Assembly: GCA_013115145.1 (NCBI GenBank)
Contig: JAAPAO010000215.1
Span: forward strand, 1-51,871
Direction: 5' to 3'
From: Perkinsus chesapeaki ATCC PRA-425
Lineage: Eukaryota > Protista > Perkinsozoa
DNA: 51,871 bases
How positions within the stretch are numbered: position 1 is the first letter of the stretch; each line of letters begins with the position of its first letter. The notes under the pieces are model-generated. The model ran no database searches. It was not told the DNA's origin and saw only the letters and a list, made by a program, of their open reading frames with translations. The translations under genes and the position numbers were made by a program. Positions 1,781-40,469 of this stretch are shown here, in pieces.

Positions 1781-4153
1781 CTAACGCCCACAACTGCTGC
1801 TGCCCTTCTCTCTTCCTCGTGCTTTACTGGACTCGAACTCTCCTCGAGGGTGGGCCATCCCTCCTGTGATAAAGTCTGCAGGAGATTCCTCTCCCGCCTC
1901 CCCGCCCCTCAGAGAATACTGTCGCATCTGTATTTCCATGTTCTGCTTTCGTAGCGCCATTCTCATTCGGTGCATCCTCCTCAATATGCTATTAACCTCT
2001 TTCCGTCTTCTCTCATCCTCATCCCCGCCTGCTTCACCCTCTTCCTCTAATGAATGCAACAGCCGCCGTTGGCGTGATACCTTCGTCGGTGACCCTCTGT
2101 TGACCGACGGTAATGGATCAACGCTAGCAGCACGCAAGCGAGACCTCGGCAACACAGGTACTGCCTCGTGGCCACGCGGTCGTCTAGCTTGGCCTGCCTC
2201 GGGCGTCCCCTTCGATGCCACTATATAGGTGTCAGGGTCCAGGGGTGCACCCGATTCCGTTGTGGCTGATTCGCGGCTGATGCTACCAGCTCCATAGTAG
2301 GTTGTAAATGATGTGGACCGGTACACCATCCCAAGTTCATGAACAGACGGCCGAGGATCCCTGGCAGTTGCCGGATAATCTTCCATTCCTTCTCCTCCTC
2401 CTGGGCGGCAGCGGCGATCTATCGGAGGTACCACCATCCGCAGGCCGTGTGGTGAATTCACTACTGGATGATGCACTGGCTTGAAAGGGTTAGCTAGATT
2501 CTCCTTGCTAATGTGATCGTACTCTAGCAGATAGGTGAGACCCGCTACGTCCTGCCTATCCTTGCTGTTCCCCCTGCGGTGAGGTCTGTGTGGCACTGGC
2601 TCCAAAGCCCGATCTCTGTCCCGAGACTCGGACCTAGCCCTTCGCATCCCCTCCCATGGCCCTCTGAAATCAGGTCGGCCTGGTCGACTACTATAAAGCT
2701 TCAGCTGCAAGTCTTTTAGTTCTTGCTCTGTCTGCCTCTTTTCCTCCTCGGCCAACTGAAGTTCTTGAATCATGTCATCTTGAGATTGCGGCCCAGTATT
2801 CACAGAGGGCTCAACCACCCTTCGGAGGCCCATTGCATCGAGTTGCCCAACGAGCGTCCTATAAGCCTCCTGAGCACCTCTCGCTCCACTATGAGATTTG
2901 ATACAGGAGCACACTCCTGCCACAGTAGCCGCTATTCTGGAACGGACTGCCGGAAGGGTTAGAATGGCCTGGAGGCTGGGCCGATGCTTGGTGCTATCAG
3001 ACAGCATGAGGACTATGAGATCCTGCATGCCCCTGCTACAGGTCATTCGACCGTACTGACCCTGCATTATCTTCAGCGCCAACCCTTGGAGTGTGTCCCC
3101 CTCAAAGGCATATCGGCCATGGAGGATCTCATAGAGGATGCAACCGAGCCCCCAGACGTCCGACTCGTAACTGTATGGTTTGCCCTTGTAAATCTCAGGT
3201 GACATGTACACAGGTGTTCCGATCATTGTGGAGGCTAGTGCAGCCCTGCCCAAAGAGGGGTTGGAGGAGGGACCTTCCAGCATCTGTCTAGGTCGTTTCT
3301 TAATGCTAGAATGATCAACACTAACTTACCTTACTCACGCCGAAGTCTCCCAGTTTCAGGACAAGGCACCCGTCTGAGGCAGGGCCGGCAGGTTTCAGAA
3401 GAAAAACGTTCTCAGTCTTCATATCGCGATGAAGAACCTATGACGCCCGTCTCATTAAGCCTCCGCGGAAGTACACCAACCTTCTGTGAATGCATCGCTT
3501 GGAGAGCCAGACATAGCTGGATGAGCCAATTAGTGGCCGTGTCTTCCAGAGCCGGTGACAGCGGCCCTCCGGCACTCCACATGTTATGAATGTGGACACC
3601 GAGGTCACCAGATGAGCAGTATCTTGACAGAGCCAGTGTCAGCCACAATTCAGCTCAGAAAGGTCCAGTACTCCATCACTATGCATATGGCATCATCAGG
3701 AGTTACAAATGACTCTTTATGCCTAAAAGAGCCTCCAGATGCTTGCACTGGTCTGTCTCTCACCAGACGATGTTGGGATGGCCCTTGAGAGCTTCCATGA
3801 GGTGCACTTCCTGCTTCACTTGCACCTGCTGCCGATTCCCTACGTCCCTGAGTGGCACCCTCTTCAAACAGTACAGCTTATGGTCCAGGGAAGATTCAAC
3901 CACAAATACCTGAGGCTCATATCAGCTACTTCATCGTTAACTCCACCAGCCCTACCTCACCGTATGCTCCTTGACCCAACGTTCTTGTTACTCGATAAGT
4001 ATCCCCGTCATCTCCCCCACCTCTTAAAATATCACCCACTCTTATTGACCGAGGCTCAAAGGAGGCAGGTGCTCCATGATGATGGTGGTGGTGGTCAAGA
4101 TGCCGTCGATTGTCAGATGAGCCGACTATGTATGATGGGCCAACACGTGCCAT
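1781..4153 (-). CDS. NEK (NIMA-related) Ser/Thr protein kinase, multi-exon
   Basis: Spliced motifs LGQGAYGEV, YCLKRV, EVHLMEALKGHPNIV, IQLCLALQAMHSQK-VLHRDMKTENVFL, KLGDFG, STMIGTPVYMSPEIYKGKPYSYESDVWGLGCILYE, RPSLQAIL. C-terminal coiled-coil and low-complexity tail; HHHHHH run near the N-terminus. Confidence 0.93.
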
Positions 4154-10321: not shown

Positions 10322-13300
10322 TTAACAACAAGTTTTAACCAGTTTCGCCAACATAGCGTCCGCCAAAGCAGATCCAAGCACGCCAGTTGTCAGAATGAGC
10401 TCTCTTGTATGAAAATTGAGTGTACTCCTGAAACAGATGTCAATAACTTACGCCAGGCCCGGGATTCGTGTCCGCGACCGACTTCCCAGGGCACGTTCCA
10501 TATCAAAGCGGGCGATTATCGTATAGTTTAGGACCCACTAAAGGTTGCTCTAGCGTCAGAGAGCGTTCCTACTATAGAGACGTGAGGGTGTGGAAGATGA
10601 TAAATATGTTCCTAGTAGAAGTGAAACTCACCCCACTGGGCCACTGGTAACACGTTCTACTGTGGAGCATATGTCAGACATAGTCAGTCCGAGAAATCAA
10701 ACAATACCACTCCCTGTCTCTCACCGGCCCATCGCCATCGTCACTTCCTGAGGTATCCTCCTCCAATAAAGGCTGCTGTTCAGGAGCGGCCTCCTTCTCA
10801 GACTCCCTCTTGCTTGGAGGCGGCGGAGCCGGCTTATCATGAACGATGACTTCCTCCTTAATAATCGCATGGGGCAGCCAGGGATCCGAGTCCGGATGAA
10901 GGTGCAGGTCCACCTTCTGCTTGGGGTCACTCGGAGCCTGTGATCCCCTACTAAACCCGAAACCCAAAGCTTCCTCTTCTCACCTTAATCCCACAGAGCT
11001 TTGCCCTCTTGTACGGCGCCAGTTTATGGAAGACATGGTAGATCTCCCGCATGACTTCCACCCTACCTTCAAGTTGCGAGTATGTCAGTGTGCCTAATAC
11101 GCCACAGTCCGTGAGAGTGACCTCGCTGACTGCAGCCTACAGACTGATTTGAAGTCCTTGGAGCCTGCAGAGGTCTCCCGACTCAGCCTGGCAAATACAT
11201 AGTCCTCAGGATCGATCCTCTCTCCTTCCGGACGGACCCGATCCACAAATATCTCCACATTGAGTTGATACCTGATTTCGCGGATTTTCTGCTGTAGTCT
11301 GCAGGTCTCTTACGTTCGACATGGGAACATATCCTTTGATATGAGATTGGCCTCGTCCACCAATGGGTACAATTTCATAACCGTGAACTCCTCAATAAGT
11401 TTGTACTCCATGCTGCTCTTACCCCACCTGAATCAACGCTGAAGTTGATAGATACGTCGTAACCGCTCATATAGGGCATCATCCTGGAATGGAATAAAAC
11501 TAGCGCAGACAATTCCGCCAAGTTTTGCGCCTTTCGACACTAACCAGGGTTAGTACACCAAAAGACCGTGTGGGAATTCAAACTCCCCATCAATAAAACC
11601 AAACAGATATCCGGTCGCTTGTCTTGTAGCGATATATAGCCGATATGCAGGACCCTGCACAACCTACTTATCCCTGGCCTTCTGTAGGTAATGGGCCAAT
11701 TCAGATGGTAAATGGTTCTCCTGAACTAAAGCCCCGAAGGTCTTCGACATAGCCTCCTCAAAGGTCTGCCTCGAGCCTCCCATCTTAGGGTAGTGCATTC
11801 TCAACATAATAGCCTTGCCACACACCAGGTTGTCCAGATGGCGCCTGAGTGCTTCGACTGGCGGCGGCGGCGACCATCATCTTTCCTATTATTACAGCTT
11901 GGTAGGCTTCCCTCCCTTTTCGAGCTTCACGCCATTAAGGGTTATTACACCCTCACTTGATAACACCTCTACAGTGGTGTGTTGGTCAGCCGCGTCCGAC
12001 ACCACAAACTTGCATAGAGGTTCTCCTTCCGGAATGCCCAGTCCAGCCACGATAATCTACCAGCGATCCGACACGTGCCTTTCCGCTACCCAGCATCACC
12101 TTATCTCTCTTCTTATCGCTCCCCAGCAATATATCCCCACCGCTTCGACTTAGTTGCCAGGCCAGCGTCCCGTTCAAAAGAGGATCCGAGGAGACGTTCA
12201 ACAAATATGGCTTGTCCTTGTCGATGCTTTCCTGCGCCGGAAGGGCTTTGCAAACAACCAAGGCGAACTGCTCTCACCGTAGATACTAATCCTCGTTTCT
12301 CCATCTTCCTGGCTCTTTCCTCAGCCGCCTTTCGAGCAGCCTTCAACTGCTCCTCGAAGTCAGTAGCCATTGTCTTCATCCTTTGCTCTCTCTCCTCTAG
12401 CTCAGCCTACCATATAAGCAGTAGCAGCAATACACCATCGTTCAACTGGATCGTCTGGTACAGGCCAAACCCCTCCGCGAACAGAACTTGTATAGACGCT
12501 CAAGTGTGCAAAGAGGGTGGTAATCCTATTTTTATCCGGGTTTCAGGTTTGTGCCTTATGCTATTACCTTTAACCTTTTAATCTCCTCATCCTGCTCTTG
12601 ACTCCTCGCTTGTGAATCCGCCAGACTGCCCCCACGAGATGACAGCTGCTGTCCCAAATCCTGGAGTTCCTTCCGTAAGGCATCCAGCTCGGCATCAGGC
12701 TGAGCCATCAAATGCTCCTCCCCAGTGCCCATGAGGCTAACGCGAGCTCACCTTGACTTTATTCTGCTTTGCTTTCGTCTTCACCATTTTGGCAGAGTGA
12801 GCGAAGCGAAGCGTAGAAACAGTCTCCGACAATTCTGTCAGGGCCGGCGAGATGCAAGCAACCTGAAAAGAATCTTTGCGCGCTATAAAGATTTCCTCGT
12901 TCTACCATAAAAGTTTTGCTGTTCCCAGATAGCGAGTCCTTTAACAGGAACGTGAGCTTTGAGTTTCTGAAGGGTATATGTGCGCTCTTGCCCTCCGCCA
13001 AGCCAGATATAACCTGAGCATCTCCCAGTAAAGCCTGAAACTGACGCCAGAAAACGCTTACCCTGGCCAAAGTAGAAAGGCTCTGATTGATAGCAATGGC
13101 TTCCTTAAGTCGTCCTCCACTAGCACCGCTCTTGTCCTGCCTCTCGCTACCAGCCAAGTCCACCAAATTGATCCTAAAACCAGTACTTCCCACCTTATAT
13201 ATAGCCGAGCCCACCTGGCATCGAGATCTGGTTTCACTGTGGGGTCGGCTGAGACCCTCTGGAGCCTCAGTATGAACACAGCATGCGAACGGGAGGACTG

Positions 13301-18259: not shown

Positions 18260-19333
18260 TCAAAGCTGCTCTTCAAAGCCGAGGCGATTGGTGCTGCGGA
18301 GTGAACGTGGTCTCTGTGTAATGAGACTAATAGCATGCTTAACAGTACCCAATGCATTTAAAGCTCCTCCTCGAATAGTCTGAGGCATAAGGTCAGGCAA
18401 CTCACATGAAACAGGTTCGACGTTATCTAACATCAAACGTTTCACCATCGTCGGCTCCACATCCATCGAAAGGAGGATTGCGGCGACCCCAGCAATGATC
18501 GGGGCTGCTGCGGATGAACCATTAAAATAAGTTAACTCTCCAGCGGCATCTCGTCCAGTAAAGATATTCGTACCATATGTAGCGACATCAACTCTTTCAC
18601 CCCAGTTTGAAAAAGTTGACAATACATTATGAGTCTGATTATCGAGAAGATAGGCCGTACAGATACCAAGGGGGCCGCCGAACCAACAAGGATAAGTATC
18701 TGATGCCCTGCTAAATGAGTTACCAGCCGAGGATACGAGAAGGATACCATGCTGCTGAGCCTTCAGCAAAGCGTTCCACAAGAGATGTTGTTCGGTTAGA
18801 TTTTTGCGGCTGAGGCTGTAGCCAAAAGACATGGATATCACATCTACCTCCAAGTCGATGGCCATTTCAATAGCAGCTAAGAAGTTAGGTAAGGGCAGGG
18901 ATTCATCGTCGCCCAAGATTTGCAATGGTATAAGAGTAACATCAGGAGCAACACCAACCATACCATATGAGTTGTTACCCTTGGCAGCCAGTATCTTGCA
19001 TACATTCGTGCCATGCCTGTTAACAGTTGTCATATCCGGCGAGTTGGTGAAGAAGTTCCATCCGCCATCCAGATAACCCCCACTCTTCTTCTTAACAGTT
19101 TCCTTTAAAGAAGCAAAATCTTCATCTGTCCAGTCAATACCAGAATCGAGCACAGCCACCTTCACCTTTCGTTTAACATATGGACGTGAGATGCGCCAGA
19201 CCTCTCCCATTTGTAACCACTCCAAATGCCTCTGGTAATGAGCATCAGGATCATTCACGTGTAAAGAGGTATCAGACGAGGAATCAGTAGCTTCAGCATG
19301 CAAGGCGAATAGAAAGATAGAGAGGATGAACAT
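18260..19333 (-). CDS. Secreted subtilisin-like serine protease (S8), copy A, intronless
   Basis: Signal-like MFILSIFLFALHAEA; triad VAVLDSG / RHGTNVC / NGSSAAAP; oxyanion SSAGN; FSNWGERVDVATYG. Confidence 0.92.
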   Translation of the reverse strand: MFILSIFLFALHAEATDSSSDTSLHVNDPDAHYQRHLEWLQMGEVWRISRPYVKRKVKVAVLDSGIDWTDEDFASLKETVKKKSGGYLDGGWNFFTNSPDMTTVNRHGTNVCKILAAKGNNSYGMVGVAPDVTLIPLQILGDDESLPLPNFLAAIEMAIDLEVDVISMSFGYSLSRKNLTEQHLLWNALLKAQQHGILLVSSAGNSFSRASDTYPCWFGGPLGICTAYLLDNQTHNVLSTFSNWGERVDVATYGTNIFTGRDAAGELTYFNGSSAAAPIIAGVAAILLSMDVEPTMVKRLMLDNVEPVSCELPDLMPQTIRGGALNALGTVKHAISLITQRPRSLRSTNRLGFEEQL

Positions 19334-19770
19334 TGATGTAAATAAACTGCACATGTCAGATAAGCACGAGGTGGCTCAATGCATGTAGCGGCCATCCCGG
19401 TGTGGCTGAGAGAAGTAGATCGCGGCTAAGTAGTAGTCCAGTGCGGATGGGAGCTTTCACGAGACGGGTGGCACGGGTAGCTGGGCGACTGGAGACTGGA
19501 GACTGGAGACAAGGTCACCATCCGGCGTCTTTGATCTCCACGGTCACGTCTCCCTGCCCAAGTTGGCGATTGCAGCTGGTTCCGAAATTCGGAATCCGAA
19601 TCAGCAATGGAACTAGTGGTTTGACCATTCGTGATTGTCATTGTCAACTCAACTTCTTGTGTCTGCTTATCGTTCCCTCGTGAGCTCGCCCTTCATAGCG
19701 GACAGACGTTGGTGACGCGTAGCGAACTTAACAGCTCAAGACAAAGGACTATTGAAACTGTTAAGATGTA

Positions 19771-23140: not shown

Positions 23141-24664
23141 TCACATAGTATTTCGGCGATAAAATCCCCGTTCGTATTCCTCCAGTGTCATCTCATCCAC
23201 CTGAAAATCATACCGCTCTCTCATTTACGTCACGAAATTTTTAGCTTATTACCCTCATAACATCTTTACTAACTTTAGGATAATTATAGGTCTTATTGAT
23301 AACAGTGCTATCATTCTTCCATAACTTGTTTTGTACAGGTGTGGCCCATGTACCAGGGCTGGGATATCTAACCAAAGGCTGCCTTGCCGAGCCGGCCTCA
23401 TCCGCTCACTCTGTGCAGTTGCTGCCCGGTGTAGCTGTAGTCGCTGTTCGACTTGAAGTACCCGTTATATTACCACCGCACGAGTAGTTGGCAGCTAGCC
23501 AGGGGTGGGTCTTCGACAGGGGTATACGTATCTTATTGGAGAGACAGACTTGGTCAGAGGTGAAAAATAATAACACAATGGAGACAAAAAGGCATCTTAA
23601 TGGAGATCGAACAACCCAAACTTTAATGAATGTATTTACGTTTTAAGTATAATAAGAACAATATAAGTTTTATTCGACGATGCTGATTAGGAATGTAGAC
23701 TATAACAACTAAGTAGTCGCCTACAGTCAAGAGTGACATCATTTGTGTCCTTCATAAGGACCCCATCTACGTCTATTCGAATACCTACTCCCCATTATTA
23801 CTACCTTGGCCTCCTCAAAATCCCTTTTACTAACTCCAGCGCATACCAGTCTACCGTGCCGATAGACATGTTGGCCTGCTAACCTTCGCTGATCGGCCAG
23901 TTTACTCATCGATCGTAATATCTCCTTAGTTTCACGTACCCCATATGACCGGCCCTACAACGACACCAAATCATGTCACCCGCTGGGCCCGGAGTACTAC
24001 CTCCTTGTGGCAATTTCGTGGCGCGCAGTCGAGAGACCTGTTTGTCATACTGCGCTCTGAGTTTATGATCGATGACCGAGATGTCTAAGCGCCACTAGTG
24101 CCGAGTATTATTTCCTATCTAGCTACCTTGAGCAAGCCACGGTCAGAGATTCTAGGTACGAACGTGCGTGACGGAGCAGCTCGGCCATCAACTGGGAAAT
24201 CACCGTACGGTCCATCACCAGCGGCAGCCCCTTTATGCCCATCAAACGTTACCTACAAGAGTTCTCCAGATACCCCTATACACGTCTTAATAATATTACG
24301 CTCCGTACGACCTGAGGTGCTTTCTTTCTATTATCGGCTCGAAGGCTTGGACGCCGGCTCTGTGTGGGCGCCAATGTCGGGCGATAAGCGCTGGGAGAGC
24401 CATACACGGTATTCCGGCCGCCGCATATTAGATTAGAAAACCAGCGTGTGAACCGAGACCTGGTCTCGGGGACCTTCTTATCGTCGATAACGTCGATATT
24501 ATAGTCTAATACGACACTTGGTGGGTGGTCAGCTGGTGCTACTACTAGCCTTTCTGAGACATTATCAACTGAGCAATGGGGAGCGCTATGCCTAATAGAG
24601 ATAAAGTATAAATGTGTATATATCAATGCAATCACCTGTGCGAACTCCTCCAAGCTAACGGCAT
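23141..24664 (-). CDS. Hypothetical protein, multi-exon, boundaries approximate
   Basis: Consecutive open exons flanked by GT/AG (SVDNVSERLVVAP..., VTFDGHKGAAAGDGPYGDF..., WRLDISVIDHKLRAQYDKQ, RLVCAGVSKRDFEEAK). No family recognised. Confidence 0.4.
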
Positions 24665-24911
24665 TATAAGGCAACTGTAGAAAGTAAAGTGTTACAATAC
24701 TTGAGACAACATCTTGCTAATCTTGCATCTCCTCAACGATTTCTGCGCAAGATTATCGGCGACCGCCTCGAGCCCCGATTTCCACTGTACATTAACTGCA
24801 CTGTTATTTTTGAACGTTTCTAAACGTAGATCCGTGCAATAGCTCTCGCAGCATTCAGTATAGCAGCAAAGTACGATTTGTTTTTCAGTTCTTATCAAGC
24901 CTCTTGGTTTA

Positions 24912-25583
24912 ATGCAAGCTTCTTCTTCTCCTACTGGTGGTGGTTATCCGGCCCCTATGGCTCAGCCATTCTTCGATCATCAGTCTGTAATGGTAACATG
25001 CCCTAATTGCAAAACACAGGGCCCTACTAGAGTCTGGCATAGGATAAATGTTGGTAAGGGGGACTCGGGATAGAATAATAATCGATAATTACTAAACTAT
25101 CCTCACTGCTCCCCACAACACAATTTCCATGCAGTCTGCTCCAGCCGTTGTGTGAGCGTGCTAAGTAGACAGATCCACCAGAAATAGCTATGAGCTCATC
25201 TTTATATGAACAGCTACGCTCGTACTGGGGCCCTTTGGAGAAGTCGGCTTTTGTTTGACGGTGTGGGATATTTACATAGAACCTTACTCTCTTGATCTCA
25301 TTCGCCGAACCTATTACAGTTTGCCCTTTGCTCAGGTTCACTAGTGGCCATGGTAGTCATAGCTGTGGTATTCTTCCCTCTTTTCTGGCTACCTCTGGTC
25401 TGCCAAAGCTGCCAGTCAGCGGAGCACCATTGCTCAACGTGCAATTACAAAGTTGGGCAGAAATGCTTCCTACTAGATGACAGCCAGGATCATCCTGCCT
25501 ATGTCCAGCCCTCTACGTACACATATGGAACCACTCCTTCTCCTCCTCCCCCTCAAGTCCCTTCACACACGGCGAAGGAGTAA
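24912..25583 (+). CDS. LITAF-domain protein 1 of 7
   Basis: VTCPNCKTQGPT; intron 25054-25335; GSLVAMVVIAVVFFPLFWLPLVCQSCQSAEHHCSTC; Pro-rich tail. Confidence 0.9.
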
Positions 25584-25656
25584 TATCATTGAACCTGCTG
25601 TCAATACACAACCAATAGATTGGCGTTATCAATACTCTTCTCCGGACTAGGGGGGC

Positions 25657-26418
25657 ATGCTTTGGAGACATCCAGGAGATCATTCTCTCAGTAGTAGCCA
25701 TGCATTTACCATTGGCCATCAACACGTACTGACGGAAACAGCTAAGCCTGTTAGCTCATTCGTTCCTACTTACATGCAACCAGTCATTGGTGGGCTCCCA
25801 GCCCCGCCGGTGATGACGCCGCTCTTCTTCGGCGATGATCCTGTAGTGGTGGTGTGTCCCAACTGCGGTAATCAAGGGCCAACTCGAACTCGGCATACGA
25901 TAGGAATCGGTAAGGTAAACTTTTACATGATAACTGCCGATCGTTTGCATTATTTGACCTGTTCGCTCTAATTAAACGGGCCCGAGAAGAGTGGCTTCTG
26001 GATTCGTGCACTCGGTAGGGAGTGGGTGGTATGTGACTAGTGCCATCACCGTAGATGCAAAGATAAGGCTTCTTGGTCAGGTTCCTGGGCGTTTATGTTG
26101 CTTATAGCTGTTGTCTTCTGCCCTCTGTTTTGGTTACCTCTGGTATGCCATAGCTGCCAATCGATTGAGCATTGCTGTATGTCATGCAACTATAAGATGG
26201 GCGAGAAACCATTCTTCCTGGCCGACACACCTCAGCCTGCGAATGGCCGTCCGACAGTGATAAACATCAACGGGCCTCCCTCCAATGCACCTCCATATGC
26301 CCCTAATGCTTACCCTACTGCACCGCCGTATGCTTACGTTGATTCATCAAGTGCTTTTGCTCACGCACCCCCTGTTCAACCGGTCTGTGGCCTTTCTGTT
26401 TACCGGGGCCCTGATTAG
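25657..26418 (+). CDS. LITAF-domain protein 2 of 7
   Basis: VVCPNCGNQGPT; intron 25910-26080; FCPLFWLPLVCHSCQSIEHCCMSC; Pro/Tyr tail containing PTAP. Confidence 0.9.
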
Positions 26419-26520
26419 TTGGACAAGTGGAATGGAACCCATGATGGCACCATTTTACGCTGTTAGGCGCTTAATGAGTAGAGTTAACAATATCAGGATG
26501 AAGCAGTTTGATCTGTTCAT

Positions 26521-27200
26521 ATGGCAGCATCACAGAATTACATGCCCCTCACTGGGAGTGTGGCGGAGGCGGCGGTAGCATCCTCCACTGCCCAGCCACC
26601 AGTACCGCTGGCTGTCTGCTACTTTGACCATACCCCCACGGTCATCCGATGCCCCTACTGTCATTATACTGGCCCTACACAAGTAGAGCATAAGGTTGGC
26701 TCTGGTAAGGGAATATCTTCCAGTCCCTGTGGTTGTGTATAATACTACTCACTCCACATTATTTGCGAATCATAATAATAAGTAACACAGTAGAAGCAAC
26801 TCATGGCTATTTATATTGACTTCTCAAACGATACAGTTTCCACCAGTTCCCTTTGAATGTATTTTAACCACGAGGACGGCACCAACGCTTGGTCTAATAA
26901 TGTTATCTATTACAAATTTCAATCTTACTATGTCTATGTAACGTACGACTTGCGTAACCGGCTTCATAGTAATATGCTCGTTTCTGATACATTTGACCTT
27001 TTAAAGTCACGTGAGGTGTTCTGAAACAAATTTCACTGCATGACGGTGCTTGCTCAGGTACTTGGCTCTGCGTCGCTATAATAGCTATGGTATTCTTCCC
27101 CTTGGCTTGGGTACCACTGTGCTGTAAAGACTGTCAACAAGCCGATCATACATGCCCAAACTGCAACCTTAAGGTTGGTCAGAAATTATTCATTACTTAA
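26521..27200 (+). CDS. LITAF-domain protein 3 of 7
   Basis: IRCPYCHYTGPT; intron 26705-27057; FFPLAWVPLCCKDCQQADHTCPNC...LFIT*. Confidence 0.9.
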
Positions 27201-27302
27201 TAGCATCTAACCGTGTCACCATTAATTAGTTGTCATTCTCTGCTCTGTTGTGTTCTGCGCTGATGTGGCTATGATGTGAGTCAGCTCTAGTTCATTTGGC
27301 TC

Positions 27303-27660
27303 ATGTCCAGTGAGGAGTCCAAGCCCCTTAGTTCCGAGCCAGCAGCGCCGCCTCTCCTTCCCCCGGCCCCTATGGCCGGAGCTTACTTTGACCATGATCC
27401 TGCTACTATTACGTGTCCGTATTGCAGACATACTGGCCCCACCAAAGTCAACCACAACATCAGTCTTGGTGAGCAAGCTCCCTCGCAACTGTTCCACAGT
27501 TTTGGCGTTGTTAGGTACGTGGATTTGTGTTATCATTCTGGCCATCATATTCTTTCCTGTTGCATGGATTCCATGCTGCTGCAAAGCCTGCCAGCAGGCT
27601 GATCATAGATGCGTCAAATGCAACGTCAAAGTCGGCGAGAAAGTTTTCATAACACGATAG
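27303..27660 (+). CDS. LITAF-domain protein 4 of 7
   Basis: ITCPYCRHTGPT; intron 27469-27514; FFPVAWIPCCCKACQQADHRCVKC...VFITR*. Confidence 0.92.
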
Positions 27661-27772
27661 TTCGATGCCTTCAGCATGTTTTAGATAGGTTGCATTTGTT
27701 GACTGTTTCTATTTTGCGTTGGCCACACAGGGAGCGTGCTCCTAGCAGTTTCAGCGCAAGCCCTTCTGAATT

Positions 27773-28122
27773 ATGTCTGACGAGGAACAGAAAGCCTTCG
27801 TTGAGTCCCAGGCACCGATCGCCCCTGCTCCGATGGCCAACGTTTACTTCTCTGACGAGCCCATGCCGGTCACTTGCCCCTATTGTAAGGCCACCACTAC
27901 CACTATGGTCGAGCATAAGGTCAGCGCTGGTAGGTTCCTGGAGGGCCTCTGCCTCGTTGCTTAACTGGTTTGTCAGGTTCGTGGATTTGCGTGGCCATTC
28001 TTGTCCTGCTCTGCTTCCCCCTGGCATGGATACCTTGCTGCTGCGACTCCTGCCAGCAGGCTGATCATCGTTGTGGCAACTGTCACCAGAAGGTTGGTGA
28101 AAAGGTCTTCATCACCAGCTAG
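27773..28122 (+). CDS. LITAF-domain protein 5 of 7
   Basis: VTCPYCKATTTT; intron 27930-27976; CFPLAWIPCCCDSCQQADHRCGNC...VFITS*. Confidence 0.92.
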
Positions 28123-28240
28123 GAGATCGATATCGACGGCAAACGTCGATATCTTCAAGTTGTACCCGAACATGTCTGTGTTGTTATTGTAACCGTAGCT
28201 TGGTTTTTAATTGCCATACAATTCATATCAGCTTCCTTTA

Positions 28241-28703
28241 ATGACAGCACCGGATTCTTACGGCACCGAGCAGCCACTGGCTCCCGTAGCCTCCGTCGAT
28301 CTTGGACACTCCCCTGACTATGTTGAATGTTCACGTTGTGGCCATAAGGGGCTTTCAATTGTAGAGCACCGCAGCTCTTGTGGTAAGCATCATCACATCT
28401 ATACAGTATAAAGGAATATGTGAGGATAGACTTTACGTACCTCTACTCGCTTCTGAACTGTTACGCCCCCACCGACTCCAACGGCCGTGCTCGATTGACC
28501 AGGCCGGGCTTGCTGTGAATCCCTCGAATGAGGCATCGCACTTATTTTCGTTATTAGGTACTTTCATTTGCTCCTGTCTGCTACTTATCCTATTCTGCCC
28601 GGTGTTTTGGGTACCATTCTTCTGCCATAGCTGCCAGGAGGCCGATCACGTTTGCGCATCTTGCGGTGAACAAGTCGGGAAGAAAGTGTTCATTACTGAG
28701 TGA
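28241..28703 (+). CDS. LITAF-domain protein 6 of 7
   Basis: VECSRCGHKGLS; intron 28383-28557; FCPVFWVPFFCHSCQEADHVCASC...VFITE*. Confidence 0.9.
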
Positions 28704-28833
28704 TGATGGAGACAACAACTGCCTTCCTAAATCTTCAATGACTCATGTAGATGTTATGATGACGAACTTGTTGTGAATGGCATGGGTTTGAGTTTCGGGA
28801 TTAAGAAAAGTGAATACGTGCTCAGTTTCCACA

Positions 28834-29624
28834 ATGGATTCACATGATAATGAGCCGGCCTCAGTTAAGCAGTCTAAGGGAAGGTACCGCAGTAGACGGT
28901 CCAGAAAGCGTCAAGAAAGCCAGGGGACCGAGCAAGAGGAGGAGCCAGCCAACTCGGGCGACGAACTAGCCGTGGACGATGCCGTGCAGGGCGAGGCTCC
29001 TAGCCTTTGGCAAGCAGTAGCTGATGAACCGGAGACCGTCACAGTGGAACCAGGTGACCAGGGCAAGACCGTGACCGATGATGAAGTCGCTGACGATTCT
29101 GAGAAAGCAAAGTCGGACCCTGAAGAATCCAGGGAGCTGCGAGTGCACATTGAAGGGCTGGTGCCTCGAGACTTTCACGTCAAGAGCGAAGACGACGACG
29201 ACGATGAGGTTATTGAATTACACAGCGATGTTGTTGACCGAAAGGAGCCTGCTGGGGCGCCGACCGACCGAGAAGGTGAAGCTACGAAGCTTCTGGCCAC
29301 AGAGCATGCTATCTACGGTGCGTTTAAGGATGATATCTTCCCCCGGACAGAACCTGGTCACGAGCCCTTTGACCTCAAATGTCCGGTGTGCGGCCACTCG
29401 GGGTCGAGCGTTGTGACTCATGAACGTTCTTGTGGTGAGTCTTGGTGTGCTCGGGGAATAGAGAATTTAGTTATTCAGGTACGTACATTTGCATGGCCAT
29501 TTTGCTGGTGTTGTTCTTCCCACTGTGCTGGCTGCCTCTCTGCTGCGAGAGCTGCCAGGAGGCCACTCACCGGTGTGAGCACTGCGAGGCCTTCGTTGGT
29601 GAACAAGTGTTCATCACAAAGTAA
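28834..29624 (+). CDS. LITAF-domain protein 7 of 7, with long acidic N-terminal extension
   Basis: About 170 aa basic-then-acidic N-terminus; LKCPVCGHSGSS; intron 29435-29478; FFPLCWLPLCCESCQEATHRCEHC...VFITK*. Confidence 0.9.
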
Positions 29625-29742
29625 CCTTATTGTACCGCATGAGATCATGCTGAGCTTTTAAGCTGCTTGTCCTTTCATCGCGTCTTGTGTTGCTGACAGC
29701 CTGAGGCTCTTTTAAGTTGACTTATTATTAAATTAATATTCC

Positions 29743-32700
29743 ATGACATCTAAGGTGGAGCTCCCTAGTCTCCCCGGATACCAACCCCAGGTCGGTGGCA
29801 CTTTCTGTGCACGCTCCTCTCCCCTTTTGACGTTTTTTTTATAATGTTCGATCATTATCATTATGGTCAGGTTAAGAAGACGAGTTACCATCTCCATCAG
29901 ACTTGGGGGTTTAACAATGGTCAGTGTATAGAGAAGAGCTTATCGACACGAGAAAGACCGAAGCTTGTAGAGGTAAGGAGAACAACAACACGGGTATCAG
30001 AAAATTTACTCTGCTGCGATCGGCTATTTGCGTGTTGTAAAGAATCCTTGAAAAGGCGACACTAACAGTGTCTGTGAACGATGACCCGTTATAGAATTGA
30101 GCATTGCGTATCACTTTGTGCGTAGCTACTAGGAAAACGAAGACTACGAAGTGCTTCTCGTCTCAGGTCCCGAAGGCCCCAGAGGGATGGCGTGATGGCG
30201 ATACAATACCCAGGTCCACCACACGCGATGTCTTCGTCGCACCGAACGGTGCCACGGAGACCGAACAACTTCCAGCCTGGGATGCACTCGACCGTCATGT
30301 GTTGAGGTAAGGAAGACATATAGTCTTATTAAGATATAACAGGAGCATGCTCCTACTGTGTGACTCGGAACTGATACTTAATCCGGAGTCAGTGATTAAA
30401 GACATATCGTTGTTCACACCGTATACCGTTTCACGACGATTTAGGAAGGCTCGAATCCAGGCTTCACCTGTCGAAAGCTGAGCGTTCACCAAGCACTTGT
30501 TGTATTTTCGTAGATACTTTGGCTACTATAAGGAAGGCGTGGTGGAATCCAACCTAGAAAACTATCGGATCAGACCGTGCACTCTCTACTACTATCTCGG
30601 TAACCTGGCGACTATCCGTTGATCTTACCTATGTTATTTGTAGAGGATGACACTATGCATGTCAGCGAGCCGCGGGAAGATAATAGCGGTCTCAGTCAAG
30701 GGAAACTCCTCAAGCGTCACAGGTAGGCAGCAGCAGCGGACAGTGTGAAGACATGCCGGCTTTTCTCTTAGGATTCCTCGAGGTGACGGCAGCGGTTATA
30801 TAACTACTGCTGATATGGTGAGTCGTCCTGATAGTGTCTCTGTCTTACTCATTGTGTCTCAGAGAATCGGCGAGGGTATCAAAATATATGGTAGAGTTAT
30901 ACAGATAACAGCGGTTGACGGTTTTACCAGAAGTTACTACGAGAACGTAGGCAGGCGTTTGGTGGATATGTGCTTGGTATGGAGCGAACAGGTCTTGGCC
31001 ACGCCATTGGCTGATAATTTGGAAATACCAGAAGATACCTTCGCCCATACAAAGAAAGAGGCGAAAGTCGCAGGGGCAGCGATGGCACGTAAACCCGCAC
31101 AAGTTCGAATCCCAGCGTGGGCATATTCTGTTCTGATAGGCAATTATGAGAAGGTATATCGAGAAGTGATGCTCGGTGGTGGCCAGGCCAACGAGCGTAT
31201 GCAGCAATTCCTGGAGAAGGACAGAAAGGTAAACCAAACTGAGTGTAGACGAACTACCGTGGTCGATGCGCCGCAATCCTCAGGTCTGTCGCTTCTACGC
31301 TGTGATGGATGACCTTAGCACCGAGCAATACGAGAGAAGGCCTTTCACTATCTTTTACTTCCTCAGCGATGATACAATTGAGATTCGAGAACAGTAAGCT
31401 TATTGCTTCATATGCCTAGGCCTCCAACTGACCTCTAGATACCCCTTAAACTGCGGCCGAGATAACTTCCCAATATTCTTCAAGCGCGGCCGTGTGGCGA
31501 AAGGTTAGCCCTCGCCTAGTTCCGTGGCGTCCAATGCAGCTGTATGCAGATTCTATGCCTGTACTTGGCCCATCAGACCCTCTTCCCTCCCCTGGCTCCT
31601 ATTATAAGGCTGAAGACCTCTATGTCGGGCAAACCATCCGTTTGGTGAGTTCTGCCATGCTTCCCTTTATCTCCGGTTAGAAGGTCGCTTCAAGTTTGCG
31701 CCTTAAATTGTTTTGTGTGCTTCGCAAAATCAAACCTGCGCCAAATTTCGGCTCTGTTTGTTTGGTGCCAGACGGCTCGCACAATCTGTTTCCTCTCAGT
31801 TAAATAACGATCTCTTCATCTACGATGCGGATGCCTTCACAAGGGAGTACTTCAAGACCATTGGCAGTACGCTGGCCCGGAAGCCGTCTTCCTTCTTCCT
31901 CACTATTTGGTCTCAGTCGAGCTGGCTCCGAAGCGTGATGTTCGGTTACCAGAAAAGATAGTCCCCCGACCACCGACGCCACCGTACACTGGCTATGGCT
32001 CTTGGGATGACTCCATGGGATCGGTTTTAAACCTTGTCCCAAAGGTGCCGAAGAAGGACATGCAGAAGCTGATGCTCAATGAGGGTAGGTGCCTAACTGA
32101 TAGATACGTCTGCGGGATATCCTCGATCTCAGGGAAGATTCTGCGTTTTCTGGCTGTGTTCTCGAATCCGGAGCCAGAAGACGTCAACAGAAGGTCCGCA
32201 ATGTGGGCGAGCTCGCTGCGAAAAACTGAACCTCTTTAGGTTCGTGTTTAACTATCATCTATTTGACGATACTTTGTCCATACATGAGCCACCCCAAAGG
32301 AATCTGGGCATCGTCACCGGCAAGTTCCTGGAGAAGGGCGTCCATCTCAATGAAGCGACAGGTGAGCACCTTGCTGCCTCGACTAGTCCCCAGTTGCTCC
32401 CTCAGGTCGTCTCGTGAACCCCCTCGACCTGGTGCCTGGGAAGACTGTGGTTGTCTTCAATCACAGTTTCGTAATCACTGGCTGTGATCAGTAGGTCCTT
32501 ATTAAGTAATACCTCTGTTATCACCTTGTTTAGCTACACCTGTAAATACTTTGCAAAGACGTATCCGGACATAGAGATGAAGGCTGTAGACGAAGAGGGC
32601 ATGGATATCTCCAGCTCATTGGTGCCGGATGAAGAGTAAGCCTCAAGTCCATCTTGACACGTTTGATGCCTTATCAGGTCTGACCTTCGGGCGATCCTCG

Positions 32701-34967: not shown

Positions 34968-36083
34968 ATGTTTATCTTTTATTGCTCTCTGCTCACAGTG
35001 GCTCTAGCGTATGACGCTTGCAGCTGTAATGAACATGGTGAGGGCTTTAGCATACCCATTAAACAAGTCTCTGACAAGTATGGGTCGTCCTTGAGTACGG
35101 TCACTGTGAGACTGAATGGCCAGACTCTGCATCCTTTCCTGGACACTGGTGCCTCGGGAACACTCATTCCTCATCTAGAAAGTTTCGGCACTGATGCGTG
35201 CAAGGATTATCCCTATGGTTGTCTCAGCTGTGAAGCAGATTCGTGCGCTGAGGGTGAAAAGGAAACTGTTGTGTACCCTGGAAACTGCAAGGGAACATTT
35301 GTCACTCGAATTGGCTCTTTAGAAGTGGGAAGCGCTTCAGTTCTGCACTTCCGCTATGGCTTGCTGGTATCTTGGACGAAAGGTTGCCCCATGCTTTTTC
35401 CTTGTGCAATCGGCCTCGAGGCTCCGCTTGACTCTCGTAGTAAGAAAAAAGACTTTTTGTATCAAATAGTGTACGGTGGTATCATCAACAATATTGTATT
35501 GTCTTTGGACATAGCCTCAGACTCGAAGGCTATGATCGTTGGTGGCGGTGTTGGTACACCTGATGTCTTATTCAAAACTACAGAGAAGGGCAGATGGTCT
35601 ACAGCCATCACCTCGTGCATTGCTTCGGGGAATAAGAAGTACTTCCCCATAAAAGTGGGTTCCCCGCCTATCAGTGTCCAGTTCGACATGGGCTCGTCAT
35701 ATATTTCTGGGCCCTTAAGTCCTGTTAAACAGATCATGGACGCGATCGGAGATATACTAGGTTTACGAGTTGGTGTTGGCATCTACAAGTATTCCCCAAC
35801 CAAGGAGTCGACTTCTTATTATGTAACTGACTGCTCGGTATTGCACTTGGATGACCACAAAGACACGTGGATAGGATTTGAGCTTGATCTGCCGTCTAAA
35901 TATACTGCTAGGGTTTTCCTAGCAGATCTGGTAACAGAGTACAAGAAGTCCTGCTTCTTCAACCTCCGCAGCAGAGGGTCACTATCAGAGTTCGACTGGA
36001 CCTTCGGCCAGCCTTTCTTCAAAGCTCATAAGGTTCGACTATATTACGAAACCTTTGTGGTTGGATTGACCGAGCACCAGTAA
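34968..36083 (+). CDS. Secreted pepsin-like aspartic protease (A1), intronless; second catalytic motif atypical (DMG)
   Basis: Signal peptide; FLDTGASGT; flap-like VVYPG; second lobe VQFDMGSSYISGP; C-terminal WTFGQPFF. Confidence 0.85.
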   Translation: MFIFYCSLLTVALAYDACSCNEHGEGFSIPIKQVSDKYGSSLSTVTVRLNGQTLHPFLDTGASGTLIPHLESFGTDACKDYPYGCLSCEADSCAEGEKETVVYPGNCKGTFVTRIGSLEVGSASVLHFRYGLLVSWTKGCPMLFPCAIGLEAPLDSRSKKKDFLYQIVYGGIINNIVLSLDIASDSKAMIVGGGVGTPDVLFKTTEKGRWSTAITSCIASGNKKYFPIKVGSPPISVQFDMGSSYISGPLSPVKQIMDAIGDILGLRVGVGIYKYSPTKESTSYYVTDCSVLHLDDHKDTWIGFELDLPSKYTARVFLADLVTEYKKSCFFNLRSRGSLSEFDWTFGQPFFKAHKVRLYYETFVVGLTEHQ

Positions 36084-38941: not shown

Positions 38942-40003
38942 TTACTCTCCGAAACCAACCTCACTGGTGCTCCGGAGTGAACGCGGTTTAATGAGACTAA
39001 TAGCATGTTTAATAGTACTTAATGGATCTAATGCTCCTCCTCGAATGGTCTGAGGAAGGAGATGAGGGAACAGACATGAGACGGGCTTGACATTAGCCAA
39101 CATCAAGCGCTTAATCATCTTCACCTCAACATCCATCGAAAGAAGGATTGCGGCGACCCCAGCAATGATCGGCGTTGCATAAGACGAGCCATTAGAATAA
39201 GTTAATTCTCCAGCGGCATCTCGTCCAGTAAAAATATTCGTACCATATGTAGCGACATCAACTCTTTCACCCCAATTAGAGAAACTTCTTAGTACATTAT
39301 GAGTCCTGTTATCCTCTAGATAGGCTACACAAATACCAAGGGGGCCGCCGAACCAACAAGGGTAAAGGTCCGATGCCCTCGTCATTTCATTACCGGCTGA
39401 AGATACAAGTAGAATACCATGCTGCTGAGCAGTAAGCAGTGCATTCCACAAGAGATGCTGTTCAGTTTGATTATAACGGCTGAGCGTGAAGGCGAAAGAC
39501 ATGGACACCACATCTACCTCCAAATCAATGGCCATTTCAATAGCAGCTAGAAAATAAGGGAAGGAAACGGTCCCATCATAATCGATTACTTGCAATGGTA
39601 TGAGAGTAACATCAGGAGCAACACCAACCATACCATATGAGTTGTTACCCTTGGCAGCCAGTATCTTGCATACATTCGTGCCATGCCTGTTAACAGTTGT
39701 CATATCCGGCGAGTTGGTGAAGAAGTTCCATCCGCCATCCAGATAACCCCCACTCTTCTTCTTAACAGTTTCCTTTAAAGAAGCAAAATCTTCATCTGTC
39801 CAGTCAATACCAGAATCGAGCACAGCCACCTTCACCTTTCGTCTAACATATGGACGTGAGATGCGCCAGACCTCTCCCATTTGTAACCACTCCAAATGCC
39901 TCTGGTAATGAGCATCAGGATCATTCACATGTAAAGAAGTATCAGACGAGGAATCAGTAGCTCCAGCATGCAAGGCGAATAGAAAGATAGAGAGGATGAA
40001 CAT
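38942..40003 (-). CDS. Secreted subtilisin-like serine protease (S8), copy B, intronless
   Basis: MFILSIFLFALHAGA; VAVLDSG / RHGTNVC / NGSSYATP; SSAGN. Near-identical to copy A in its 5' 430 nt. Confidence 0.92.
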   Translation of the reverse strand: MFILSIFLFALHAGATDSSSDTSLHVNDPDAHYQRHLEWLQMGEVWRISRPYVRRKVKVAVLDSGIDWTDEDFASLKETVKKKSGGYLDGGWNFFTNSPDMTTVNRHGTNVCKILAAKGNNSYGMVGVAPDVTLIPLQVIDYDGTVSFPYFLAAIEMAIDLEVDVVSMSFAFTLSRYNQTEQHLLWNALLTAQQHGILLVSSAGNEMTRASDLYPCWFGGPLGICVAYLEDNRTHNVLRSFSNWGERVDVATYGTNIFTGRDAAGELTYSNGSSYATPIIAGVAAILLSMDVEVKMIKRLMLANVKPVSCLFPHLLPQTIRGGALDPLSTIKHAISLIKPRSLRSTSEVGFGE

Positions 40004-40469
40004 TGATGTAAATAAACTAAGAGTCGAGTTACTTGAGTACGAGGTGACCCAAGGAACAGGATATCGGTTCTTTGGCATCGTGACTTAGGAGCAGTCTAAT
40101 GCTAACGAGAGCTCTTAGGAGACGGGGTGACAGCTATGCTGGGAGACTGGAGCCTGCGTCACTACCCGTGACCTACGATATTGCTGTCACGTCTCTTCTC
40201 GACGCTGATGCTAGTCACTCAACTGGGAAGATAGGAACGTTTGTTCACCTCTAACGTTCAACCTCGATATCAGACAAGACCCCCTCGTGGCGGTTCTCTA
40301 CAACGAAGGCCGATCTCTGTCCATACATGAGCTCTCGAGAGGGATCTCCAAGTATAGGTAACGGCATTCTTCTCAGCTAACTGATAACGACCTTATTGCC
40401 ACAAATAGCACTTTACAGCCTTGTGCCCCCTAAACACTCTTGGCTCCTTTGATCACACTGAAGGAGCGG

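Follow-up and report, generated by a model that had tools for sequence, protein, structure and literature searches.

Seven LITAF genes in tandem

The stretch of DNA analysed here, hereafter the window, is a contig of 51,871 nucleotides (nt) from Perkinsus chesapeaki ATCC PRA-425 (JAAPAO010000215.1). Between positions 24912 and 29624 of its plus strand lie seven intact two-exon genes, arranged head-to-tail, that encode small proteins of ~95-310 residues with a LITAF domain. Gene models were rebuilt from the sequence by reading positions 24600-29900 of the window (Table 1), and they reproduce exactly the seven head-to-tail genes, the spacers between them and the single intron position described in a first-pass annotation of the same DNA. 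All seven introns have GT..AG ends, lie in phase 1 and split one Gly codon as G/GT, and in every copy the split Gly stands between the first CxxC knuckle and a hydrophobic segment. Copy 2 has two possible in-frame starts, ATG 25657, which is used in the models, and ATG 25775; the latter would give an N-terminus (MQ...) that resembles that of copy 1 and is equal to it in length, and would extend the first spacer to 191 nt.

The core of these proteins is common to all copies and their termini are diversified, much as the first-pass annotation had described. Copies 1 and 2 carry Pro-rich C-tails of ~35 and ~65 residues, respectively, copies 3-7 end in FIT(x) followed by the stop codon, and copy 7 bears an acidic N-terminal extension, with a first exon of 200 codons of which 26% are Asp or Glu. 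A DNA repeat search found that only the exon-2 blocks can still be aligned between copies (61-74%), with no similarity between copies in the introns and spacers. As nothing but these diverged blocks remains alignable, the array is old, and recent duplication or an assembly artefact as its source was ruled out. An Rfam scan of positions 24000-30500 at E <= 1 returned zero matches and thus detected no intron-encoded RNA.

Table 1. Coordinates of the array genes, of related loci and of neighbouring features. Bits are PF10601 scores (exon 1 / exon 2); spacers run from the stop codon to the next ATG.
Feature	Sequence	Strand	Exon 1 or whole feature	Intron (length)	Exon 2	Spacer	Bits	Remarks
Copy 1	window	+	24912-25053	25054-25335 (282 nt)	25336-25583	73 nt	15.9 / 32.8	Pro-rich C-tail after LITAF domain
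Copy 2	window	+	25657 (or 25775)-25909	25910-26080 (171 nt)	26081-26418	102 nt	18.3 / 28.8	longest Pro-rich C-tail, with PTAP
Copy 3	window	+	26521-26704	26705-27057 (353 nt)	27058-27200	102 nt	18.8 / 41.5
Copy 4	window	+	27303-27468	27469-27514 (46 nt)	27515-27660	112 nt	17.5 / 37.4
Copy 5	window	+	27773-27929	27930-27976 (47 nt)	27977-28122	118 nt	22.0 / 44.1
Copy 6	window	+	28241-28382	28383-28557 (175 nt)	28558-28703	130 nt	none / 37.1
Copy 7	window	+	28834-29434	29435-29478 (44 nt)	29479-29624		none / 40.4	acidic N-terminal extension of ~175 residues
Copy-1 trans-splice acceptor AG	window	+	24887..24888					23 nt upstream of ATG; RNA contigs start matching the genome at 24887
Second array, gene 1	L018 (C3193:83000-89000)		~2297-2757	(56 nt)
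Second array, gene 2	L018		~2971-3329	(50 nt)
Second array, gene 3	L018		~3429-3813	(46 nt)
Single LITAF gene	C125	minus	~30.0-30.3 kb					canonical-type, KDxxHxCPNC
Single LITAF gene	C1962		~0.88-1.12 kb					canonical-type, KDxxHxCPNC
P. marinus copy-6 remnant	L021		~11169-11300
P. marinus copy-7 ortholog	L021		11441-12038	 	12082-12227			intact, with acidic extension
P. marinus 77-residue model	L021		11768-12001					on the strand opposite to the copy-7 ortholog
P. olseni copy 6	L031		2098-2433					intact
P. olseni copy 6	L032		~11085-11354					unannotated
P. olseni copy 7, fused model	L032		11730-16184					895 residues
Subtilase (Peptidase_S8) ORF	window	-	18260-19354
Subtilase (Peptidase_S8) ORF	window	-	38942-40078
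Aspartyl-protease ORF	window	+	34968-36083					downstream of the array

A LITAF domain split by one intron

To identify the domain, each exon was searched separately against Pfam, where the profile PF10601 (zf-LITAF-like) has a curated cut-off of 23.8 bits. Exon 2 of all seven copies exceeds this cut-off unaided (28.8-44.1 bits, profile positions 27-69 of 70), which shows that the pattern of the array is not due to chance. Exon 1 of copies 1-5 matches the beginning of the same profile, from position 1 or 2 to position 23 or 25, with 15.9-22.0 bits. The predicted splice site is thus where one half of the profile meets the other, and this supports the junctions independently. Exon 1 of copies 6 and 7 had no Pfam match, and CSRC and CPVC stand at the homologous place in these two copies. 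An N-terminal CxxC knuckle is therefore present in seven of seven copies, reading CPNC in copies 1 and 2 and CPYC in copies 3-5.

Exon 1 encodes this first knuckle, and exon 2 the hydrophobic segment together with the HxCxxC knuckle. Between the split Gly and the Cys cluster the segment spans 22 residues and is hydrophobic in all seven copies (mean Kyte-Doolittle value 2.17-2.56). The Cys/His motif reported in the first-pass annotation, F[FC]PxxWxPxxCxxCQxxxHxCxxC, holds throughout, including its CFP variant in copy 5. Within exon 2, C25, H30, C32 and C35 are invariant, the last three across 13 sequences. The domain with the HxCxxC knuckle ends the protein in copies 3-7 and is followed by the tail in copies 1-2. 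The seven copies are members of the LITAF/SIMPLE-like domain family (PF10601), as had been proposed, and one ancestral phase-1 intron splits their domain at a conserved Gly.

Orthologs and synteny in sister species

The nearest proteins in a collection of 5.8 billion, found in word searches with the core of copy 4 and with a profile of P. marinus and P. olseni sequences, fall into four clusters, all of them from Perkinsus. Two P. marinus relatives are named 'lipopolysaccharide-induced transcription factor regulating tumor necrosis factor alpha, putative' and two P. olseni relatives 'LITAF domain-containing protein'. At the sensitivity of a word search, no relative of the array subtype from outside Perkinsus stood among the matches; a search with the copy-2 core gave no candidate and is uninformative on distant relatives. 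The proteins P0001 (P. marinus) and P0004 (P. olseni) are direct orthologs of copy 4, and P0003 (P. marinus) and P0002 (P. olseni) of copy 5. They are 71-86% identical in exon 2 to copies 4 and 5 and have intron position, FITS end, synteny and tandem layout in common with the array. Moreover, the annotated ortholog proteins read ...SAGSWICV... across the junction predicted for copies 4 and 5. The phase-1 Gly intron, which the first-pass annotation had seen in this array, recurs in all P. marinus and P. olseni orthologs as well as in a second array of the present genome described below.

In P. marinus, the locus (L021, GG677981.1, and a second scaffold, L022) and the window are collinear on either side of the array. 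Copies 4 and 5 are annotated there, copy 6 is decayed, copy 7 is intact but unannotated, and there is no room for copies 1-3. The copy-6 remnant, between the orthologs of copies 5 and 7, has lost its zinc Cys ligands. The copy-7 ortholog retains the acidic extension and is overlapped by a model of 77 residues on the opposite strand. Both the remnant and the unannotated copy-7 ortholog are also found on L022.

In P. olseni, orthologs of copies 4, 5 and 6 follow one another on contig L031 and are annotated there. On a larger contig, L032 (JABANP010000009.1), the flanks match the window, with a subtilase, a mitochondrial carrier, a WRKY19-type zinc finger and an unknown gene on one side of the array and a DM10/EF-hand gene on the other. 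The array of L032 comprises an annotated ortholog of copy 1 (140 residues, with a C-tail), two identical copy-4 genes and copies 5, 6 and 7. Its copy 6 differs by 1 nt in length from the intact copy of L031, which belongs to another assembly, in a G/A run near the end, and this one-base difference could be a frameshift allele or a sequencing error.

The syntenic locus has seven intact copies in the present genome; that of P. marinus has three intact copies and a decayed one, and that of P. olseni a total of six. The present array is the largest seen. Relative to it, P. marinus is without copies 1-3, and in P. olseni copy 4 has recently been duplicated and copies 2 and 3 are absent; no ortholog of these two was found at either locus. 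The first-pass annotation had cautioned that automated annotation may miss the array, and the sister genomes bear this out: copy 7 is unannotated in P. marinus and in P. olseni is fused to the downstream DM10/EF-hand gene in a single model, and one P. olseni assembly has no annotation for copy 6.

Two paralogous open reading frames (ORFs) for subtilases flank the region in the window; in P. marinus and P. olseni, too, subtilases surround the array. Downstream of it, the window has an ORF for an aspartyl protease (Table 1).

Divergence and selection

In a neighbour-joining tree of two ungapped exon blocks whose counts were summed, copies 4, 5 and 7 pair with their P. marinus counterparts (bootstrap 90%, 99% and 100%, respectively) and copy 1 with copy 2 (100%); copy 3 is closest to the group of copies 4 and 5, and deeper nodes lack resolution. 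Between orthologs, the ratio of nonsynonymous to synonymous differences per site (pN/pS) is 0.08-0.21 for copies 4-7, with synonymous sites near saturation (pS 0.55-0.95 against P. marinus and P. olseni). For the individual copies, pN/pS is 0.18-0.21 for copy 4, 0.14-0.16 for copy 5 and 0.13 for copy 6 (with P. olseni), and the copy-7 pair with P. marinus has a pN of 0.06 against a pS of 0.77. Paralogs within the array differ from each other at a pN of 0.23-0.48. Exon 1 of copy 7 is 45% identical between the present species and P. marinus over 200 residues.

The retained copies are under purifying selection. The description of the array as old and maintained is upheld by these ratios and by the orthologs of copies 1, 4, 5, 6 and 7 in other Perkinsus species. 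The array is a genuine tandem cluster of seven paralogs that is older than the split of the Perkinsus species, and it grew by old tandem duplications with turnover by gene birth and death. Taken as a joint claim, this account of the identity and evolution of the array is very nearly certain.

RNA and the 5' ends of the transcripts

The RNA data consist of four small 454 metatranscriptome runs made by reverse transcription PCR in one study of two samples, labelled marine metagenome, with 3-4 million letters each, kept as contigs. Contigs 100% identical to copy 1, with 0 mismatches, occur in the four runs. They join 24887-25052 to 25335-25608, skipping exactly 282 nt with GT..AG ends, which confirms the intron of copy 1. 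Of the predicted splice junctions, that of copy 1 has therefore been verified by RNA, and the other six copies are not covered by the runs. The mature copy-1 mRNA includes the Pro-rich tail and the stop codon, and its 3' end falls at ~25606-25608, ~25 nt past the stop codon and ~50 nt ahead of the next ATG.

At their 5' end, upstream of 24887, the copy-1 contigs carry 19-21 non-genomic letters that correspond to a dinoflagellate-type spliced leader (SL), and the terminal AG of the leader coincides with the genomic AG at 24887-24888. These letters are the dinoflagellate variant, with T where the genome-encoded leader has C, and hence derive from the primer for the dinoflagellate leader (DinoSL). 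Perkinsus mRNAs are trans-spliced (PMC3101222), and the genome encodes, in 16 exact copies, the leader CCGTAGCCATCTTGGCTCAAG, which is the PmaSL1 leader of Perkinsus marinus (PMC3101222). In combination with the nearest proteins and the synteny, this leader assigns the window to a Perkinsus species distinct from P. marinus and P. olseni. Counting 14 single-mismatch variants, with starts such as CTG..., ACG... and TCG..., PmaSL1-type leaders stand at 30 places in the genome (for instance C8:829-849, C8:7019-7039 and C476:59540-59560), and this variation suggests several spliced-leader gene variants. DinoSL-primed marine metatranscriptomes evidently capture perkinsid mRNAs too, despite the one-base leader mismatch.

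Copies 2-7 each have an AG acceptor 6-22 nt before the ATG, downstream of every upstream ATG in the spacer. This placement points to one trans-spliced mRNA per gene; by this sequence evidence, copies 2-7 probably each mature as their own trans-spliced mRNA, possibly cut from a longer precursor.

Other LITAF genes in the genome

A census with PF10601 found a second head-to-tail array on contig C3193, comprising three genes that share with the first array the phase-1 Gly intron, the FITS end and the close head-to-tail packing. The first of these genes has a Gln/Pro-rich N-terminus with a PTAP motif. When the genome was searched with a profile of array-type exon 2, exactly ten strong matches were obtained, the seven of the present array and the three on C3193. 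Single LITAF genes on contigs C125 and C1962 are more canonical than the array copies, and their introns (~47-49 nt) are placed elsewhere, within the hydrophobic segment and not at the Gly of the arrays.

Comparison with human LITAF and a possible function

In human LITAF, the domain binds zinc and its hydrophobic region dips into the membrane without crossing it, leaving both termini in the cytosol, and an N-terminal Pro-rich region carries interaction motifs (PMC5142333). Large lineage-specific expansions of the family are known, and the canonical architecture of a Pro-rich region followed by the LITAF domain is found everywhere but in apicomplexans (PMC5142333). The array copies resemble human LITAF/SIMPLE and CDIP1 (PMC5142333) in the CxxC knuckle, the 22-residue hydrophobic segment and the HxCxxC at the extreme C-terminus, as well as in the conserved stretches F.D.P...CPxC and AG..W, and a monotopic topology with cytosolic termini is expected of them. 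Unlike the human proteins, however, they lack a long Pro-rich N-terminus with PPxY; the Pro/Tyr-rich region of copies 1-2 sits after the domain, at the C-terminal end; all seven have a further CxxC, formed by an extra Cys three residues ahead of the invariant one; and copy 7 has its long acidic N-terminal extension. The canonical N-terminal Pro-rich region with PPxY and P(S/T)AP motifs is found in none of the array copies.

By analogy with human LITAF (PMC5142333), the two knuckles would bind one zinc and clamp a hydrophobic hairpin into the cytosolic leaflet of an endomembrane. With such a monotopic hairpin, both termini would face the cytosol, and the diversified ends may then serve, on an anchor shared by all, as distinct modules for adaptor or sorting functions in the cytosol. 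The candidate modules are the short N-termini, the Pro/Tyr-rich C-tails of copies 1-2, and the acidic extension of copy 7 with its polybasic and dileucine-like motifs. P. marinus has these two motifs of copy 7 as well: close to the N-terminus lies the polybasic KGRYR..RRS.KRQ, and ~50 residues ahead of the CxxC lies [DE]xxxLL. The remainder of the extension is only loosely conserved. The chances that the array joins one membrane anchor to different cytosolic adaptor ends appear evenly balanced. That the proteins act in endolysosomal sorting, in membrane repair or at the parasite-host interface, as the first-pass annotation put forward, is pure inference.

Alternative explanations

Considered as a whole, the evidence is best explained by an old, Perkinsus-wide LITAF cluster with diversified ends on a common anchor, which we consider highly likely. 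Several observations nonetheless weigh against this account or against parts of it. A motif scan found PPxY in none of the seven copies and P[ST]AP in just one, copy 2, whose C-tail has a PTAP (exon-2 residue 78); furthermore, PTAP is not conserved between copy-5 orthologs. WW and HECT matches are many in the genome and none share a contig, although this is a weak negative in a fragmented assembly. An AlphaFold2 model of the copy-4 ortholog, computed from an alignment of 4 sequences, was unusable (mean predicted local distance difference test score 44.9, predicted template modelling score 0.22). On the RNA side, support extends to copy 1 through small 454 contigs of a single study, with copies 2-7 uncovered in runs whose size makes this lack uninformative, and the primer-derived leader shows only a leader-like 5' end primed at AG 24887-24888.

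The narrow reach of the RNA bears on two further questions, whether all copies are functional and how they are expressed. Several copies, especially 2, 3 and 6, may be silent or becoming pseudogenes, in which case the effective family would be smaller than seven: copies 2 and 3 are without an ortholog at the sister loci, copy 6 is decayed in P. marinus and has the 1-nt length difference in one P. olseni assembly, and RNA was seen just for copy 1. Yet open frames and canonical splice sites are intact throughout the array, no zinc ligand has been lost from any copy, and such copies, diverged to synonymous saturation, would be unexpected without selection. Copy 6 is likewise conserved with P. olseni at the ratio given above, and in runs this tiny the absence of a transcript means nothing, so that loss of function on this scale seems improbable. 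A separate possibility, which concerns expression and is compatible with the old cluster of anchored adaptors, is that the tight head-to-tail packing reflects co-transcription: the seven genes would form one polycistronic unit with a single upstream promoter, whose long precursor is cut by SL trans-splicing coupled to polyadenylation. The genes share one strand and are just 73-130 nt apart, the copy-1 mRNA stops ~50 nt short of the next ATG, an AG acceptor stands close before the ATG of every copy and downstream of the upstream ATGs of the spacer, and the genome holds many spliced-leader genes in a genus that trans-splices its mRNAs (PMC3101222). However, no RNA contig spans two genes, the mature copy-1 mRNA being the only one seen, and polycistrons go unmentioned in PMC3101222; a polycistron is conceivable but, on balance, rather unlikely.

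The functional part of the preferred account, different adaptor ends on one anchor, competes with a reading in which the LITAF anchor is common to all copies but takes no part in sorting by ubiquitin ligases or the endosomal sorting complexes required for transport (ESCRT). Links to stress or cell death exist for animal CDIP1 and for a plant LITAF-domain protein, and the array proteins might similarly be stress or cell-death regulators, or else anchors on parasite-specific membranes. The absence of PPxY, the failure of WW and HECT matches to fall on one contig and the short N-termini without a canonical Pro-rich region all favor such a role, and apicomplexans also depart from the canonical architecture (PMC5142333). 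Conversely, a gene with a UEV domain (Vps23/TSG101-type) is present in the genome (contig C3317, 57.4 bits), copy 2 has its PTAP, the C-tail of the copy-1 ortholog in P. olseni bears PPHY as well as PSAP, and the acidic-dileucine-like motif of copy 7 is conserved. Short motifs of the PPxY and P(S/T)AP types arise easily in Pro-rich sequence. A role apart from ESCRT and ubiquitin ligases is the less probable outcome, though one to be taken seriously. As a side observation on the WW domains of this genome, a single open frame of 602 residues at C3022:14368-15558 (+) contains nine consecutive WW-domain matches.

Among the versions of the adaptor reading, one goes considerably further. In a monotopic hairpin the C-tail is as cytosolic as the N-terminus, so the lineage of copies 1 and 2 may carry its adaptor region at the other end. 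This lineage might have moved a Pro/Tyr-rich adaptor region from the N- to the C-terminus, and the array might supply interchangeable adaptors for ESCRT-dependent repair or shedding of membranes damaged by the attack of host haemocytes. This is a speculative proposal with little probability in its favor. If true, the parasite would have in this cluster its own equivalent of the part in membrane repair that has been reported for animal LITAF (Stefani et al. 2024, cited in PMC13396504).

Novelty and significance

Literature searches found no paper on Perkinsus LITAF genes, the literature that joins the two terms being concerned with the LITAF of the host bivalve, and a search on LITAF in alveolates returned nothing relevant. 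The first-pass annotation was aware of no earlier account of such an array in perkinsids, and as far as papers go none was found. The novelty of the array was nevertheless overstated: orthologs already bear LITAF names in GenBank and UniProt, and four adjacent LITAF gene models are annotated in P. olseni. The array is an ordinary lineage-specific expansion whose relatives are already labelled as LITAF in public Perkinsus genomes. Family expansions are common in eukaryotes, and knowledge of LITAF domains as such is unchanged. The new points are modest: the intron common to the copies, a Pro-rich region that one sub-lineage bears at its C-terminus, an acidic extension of copy 7 that has been conserved, and mistakes of annotation in the sister genomes.

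Perkinsus species are important parasites of shellfish, and their endomembrane and host-interface biology is poorly known. Annotation by ORFs or by automatic pipelines breaks up, fuses or overlooks the genes of this cluster. The present analysis provides clean, checked models for all seven of them, and it documents a Perkinsus-wide LITAF subfamily with a common intron and diversified termini. As a conserved family of small membrane anchors, these proteins are reasonable candidates for tagging.

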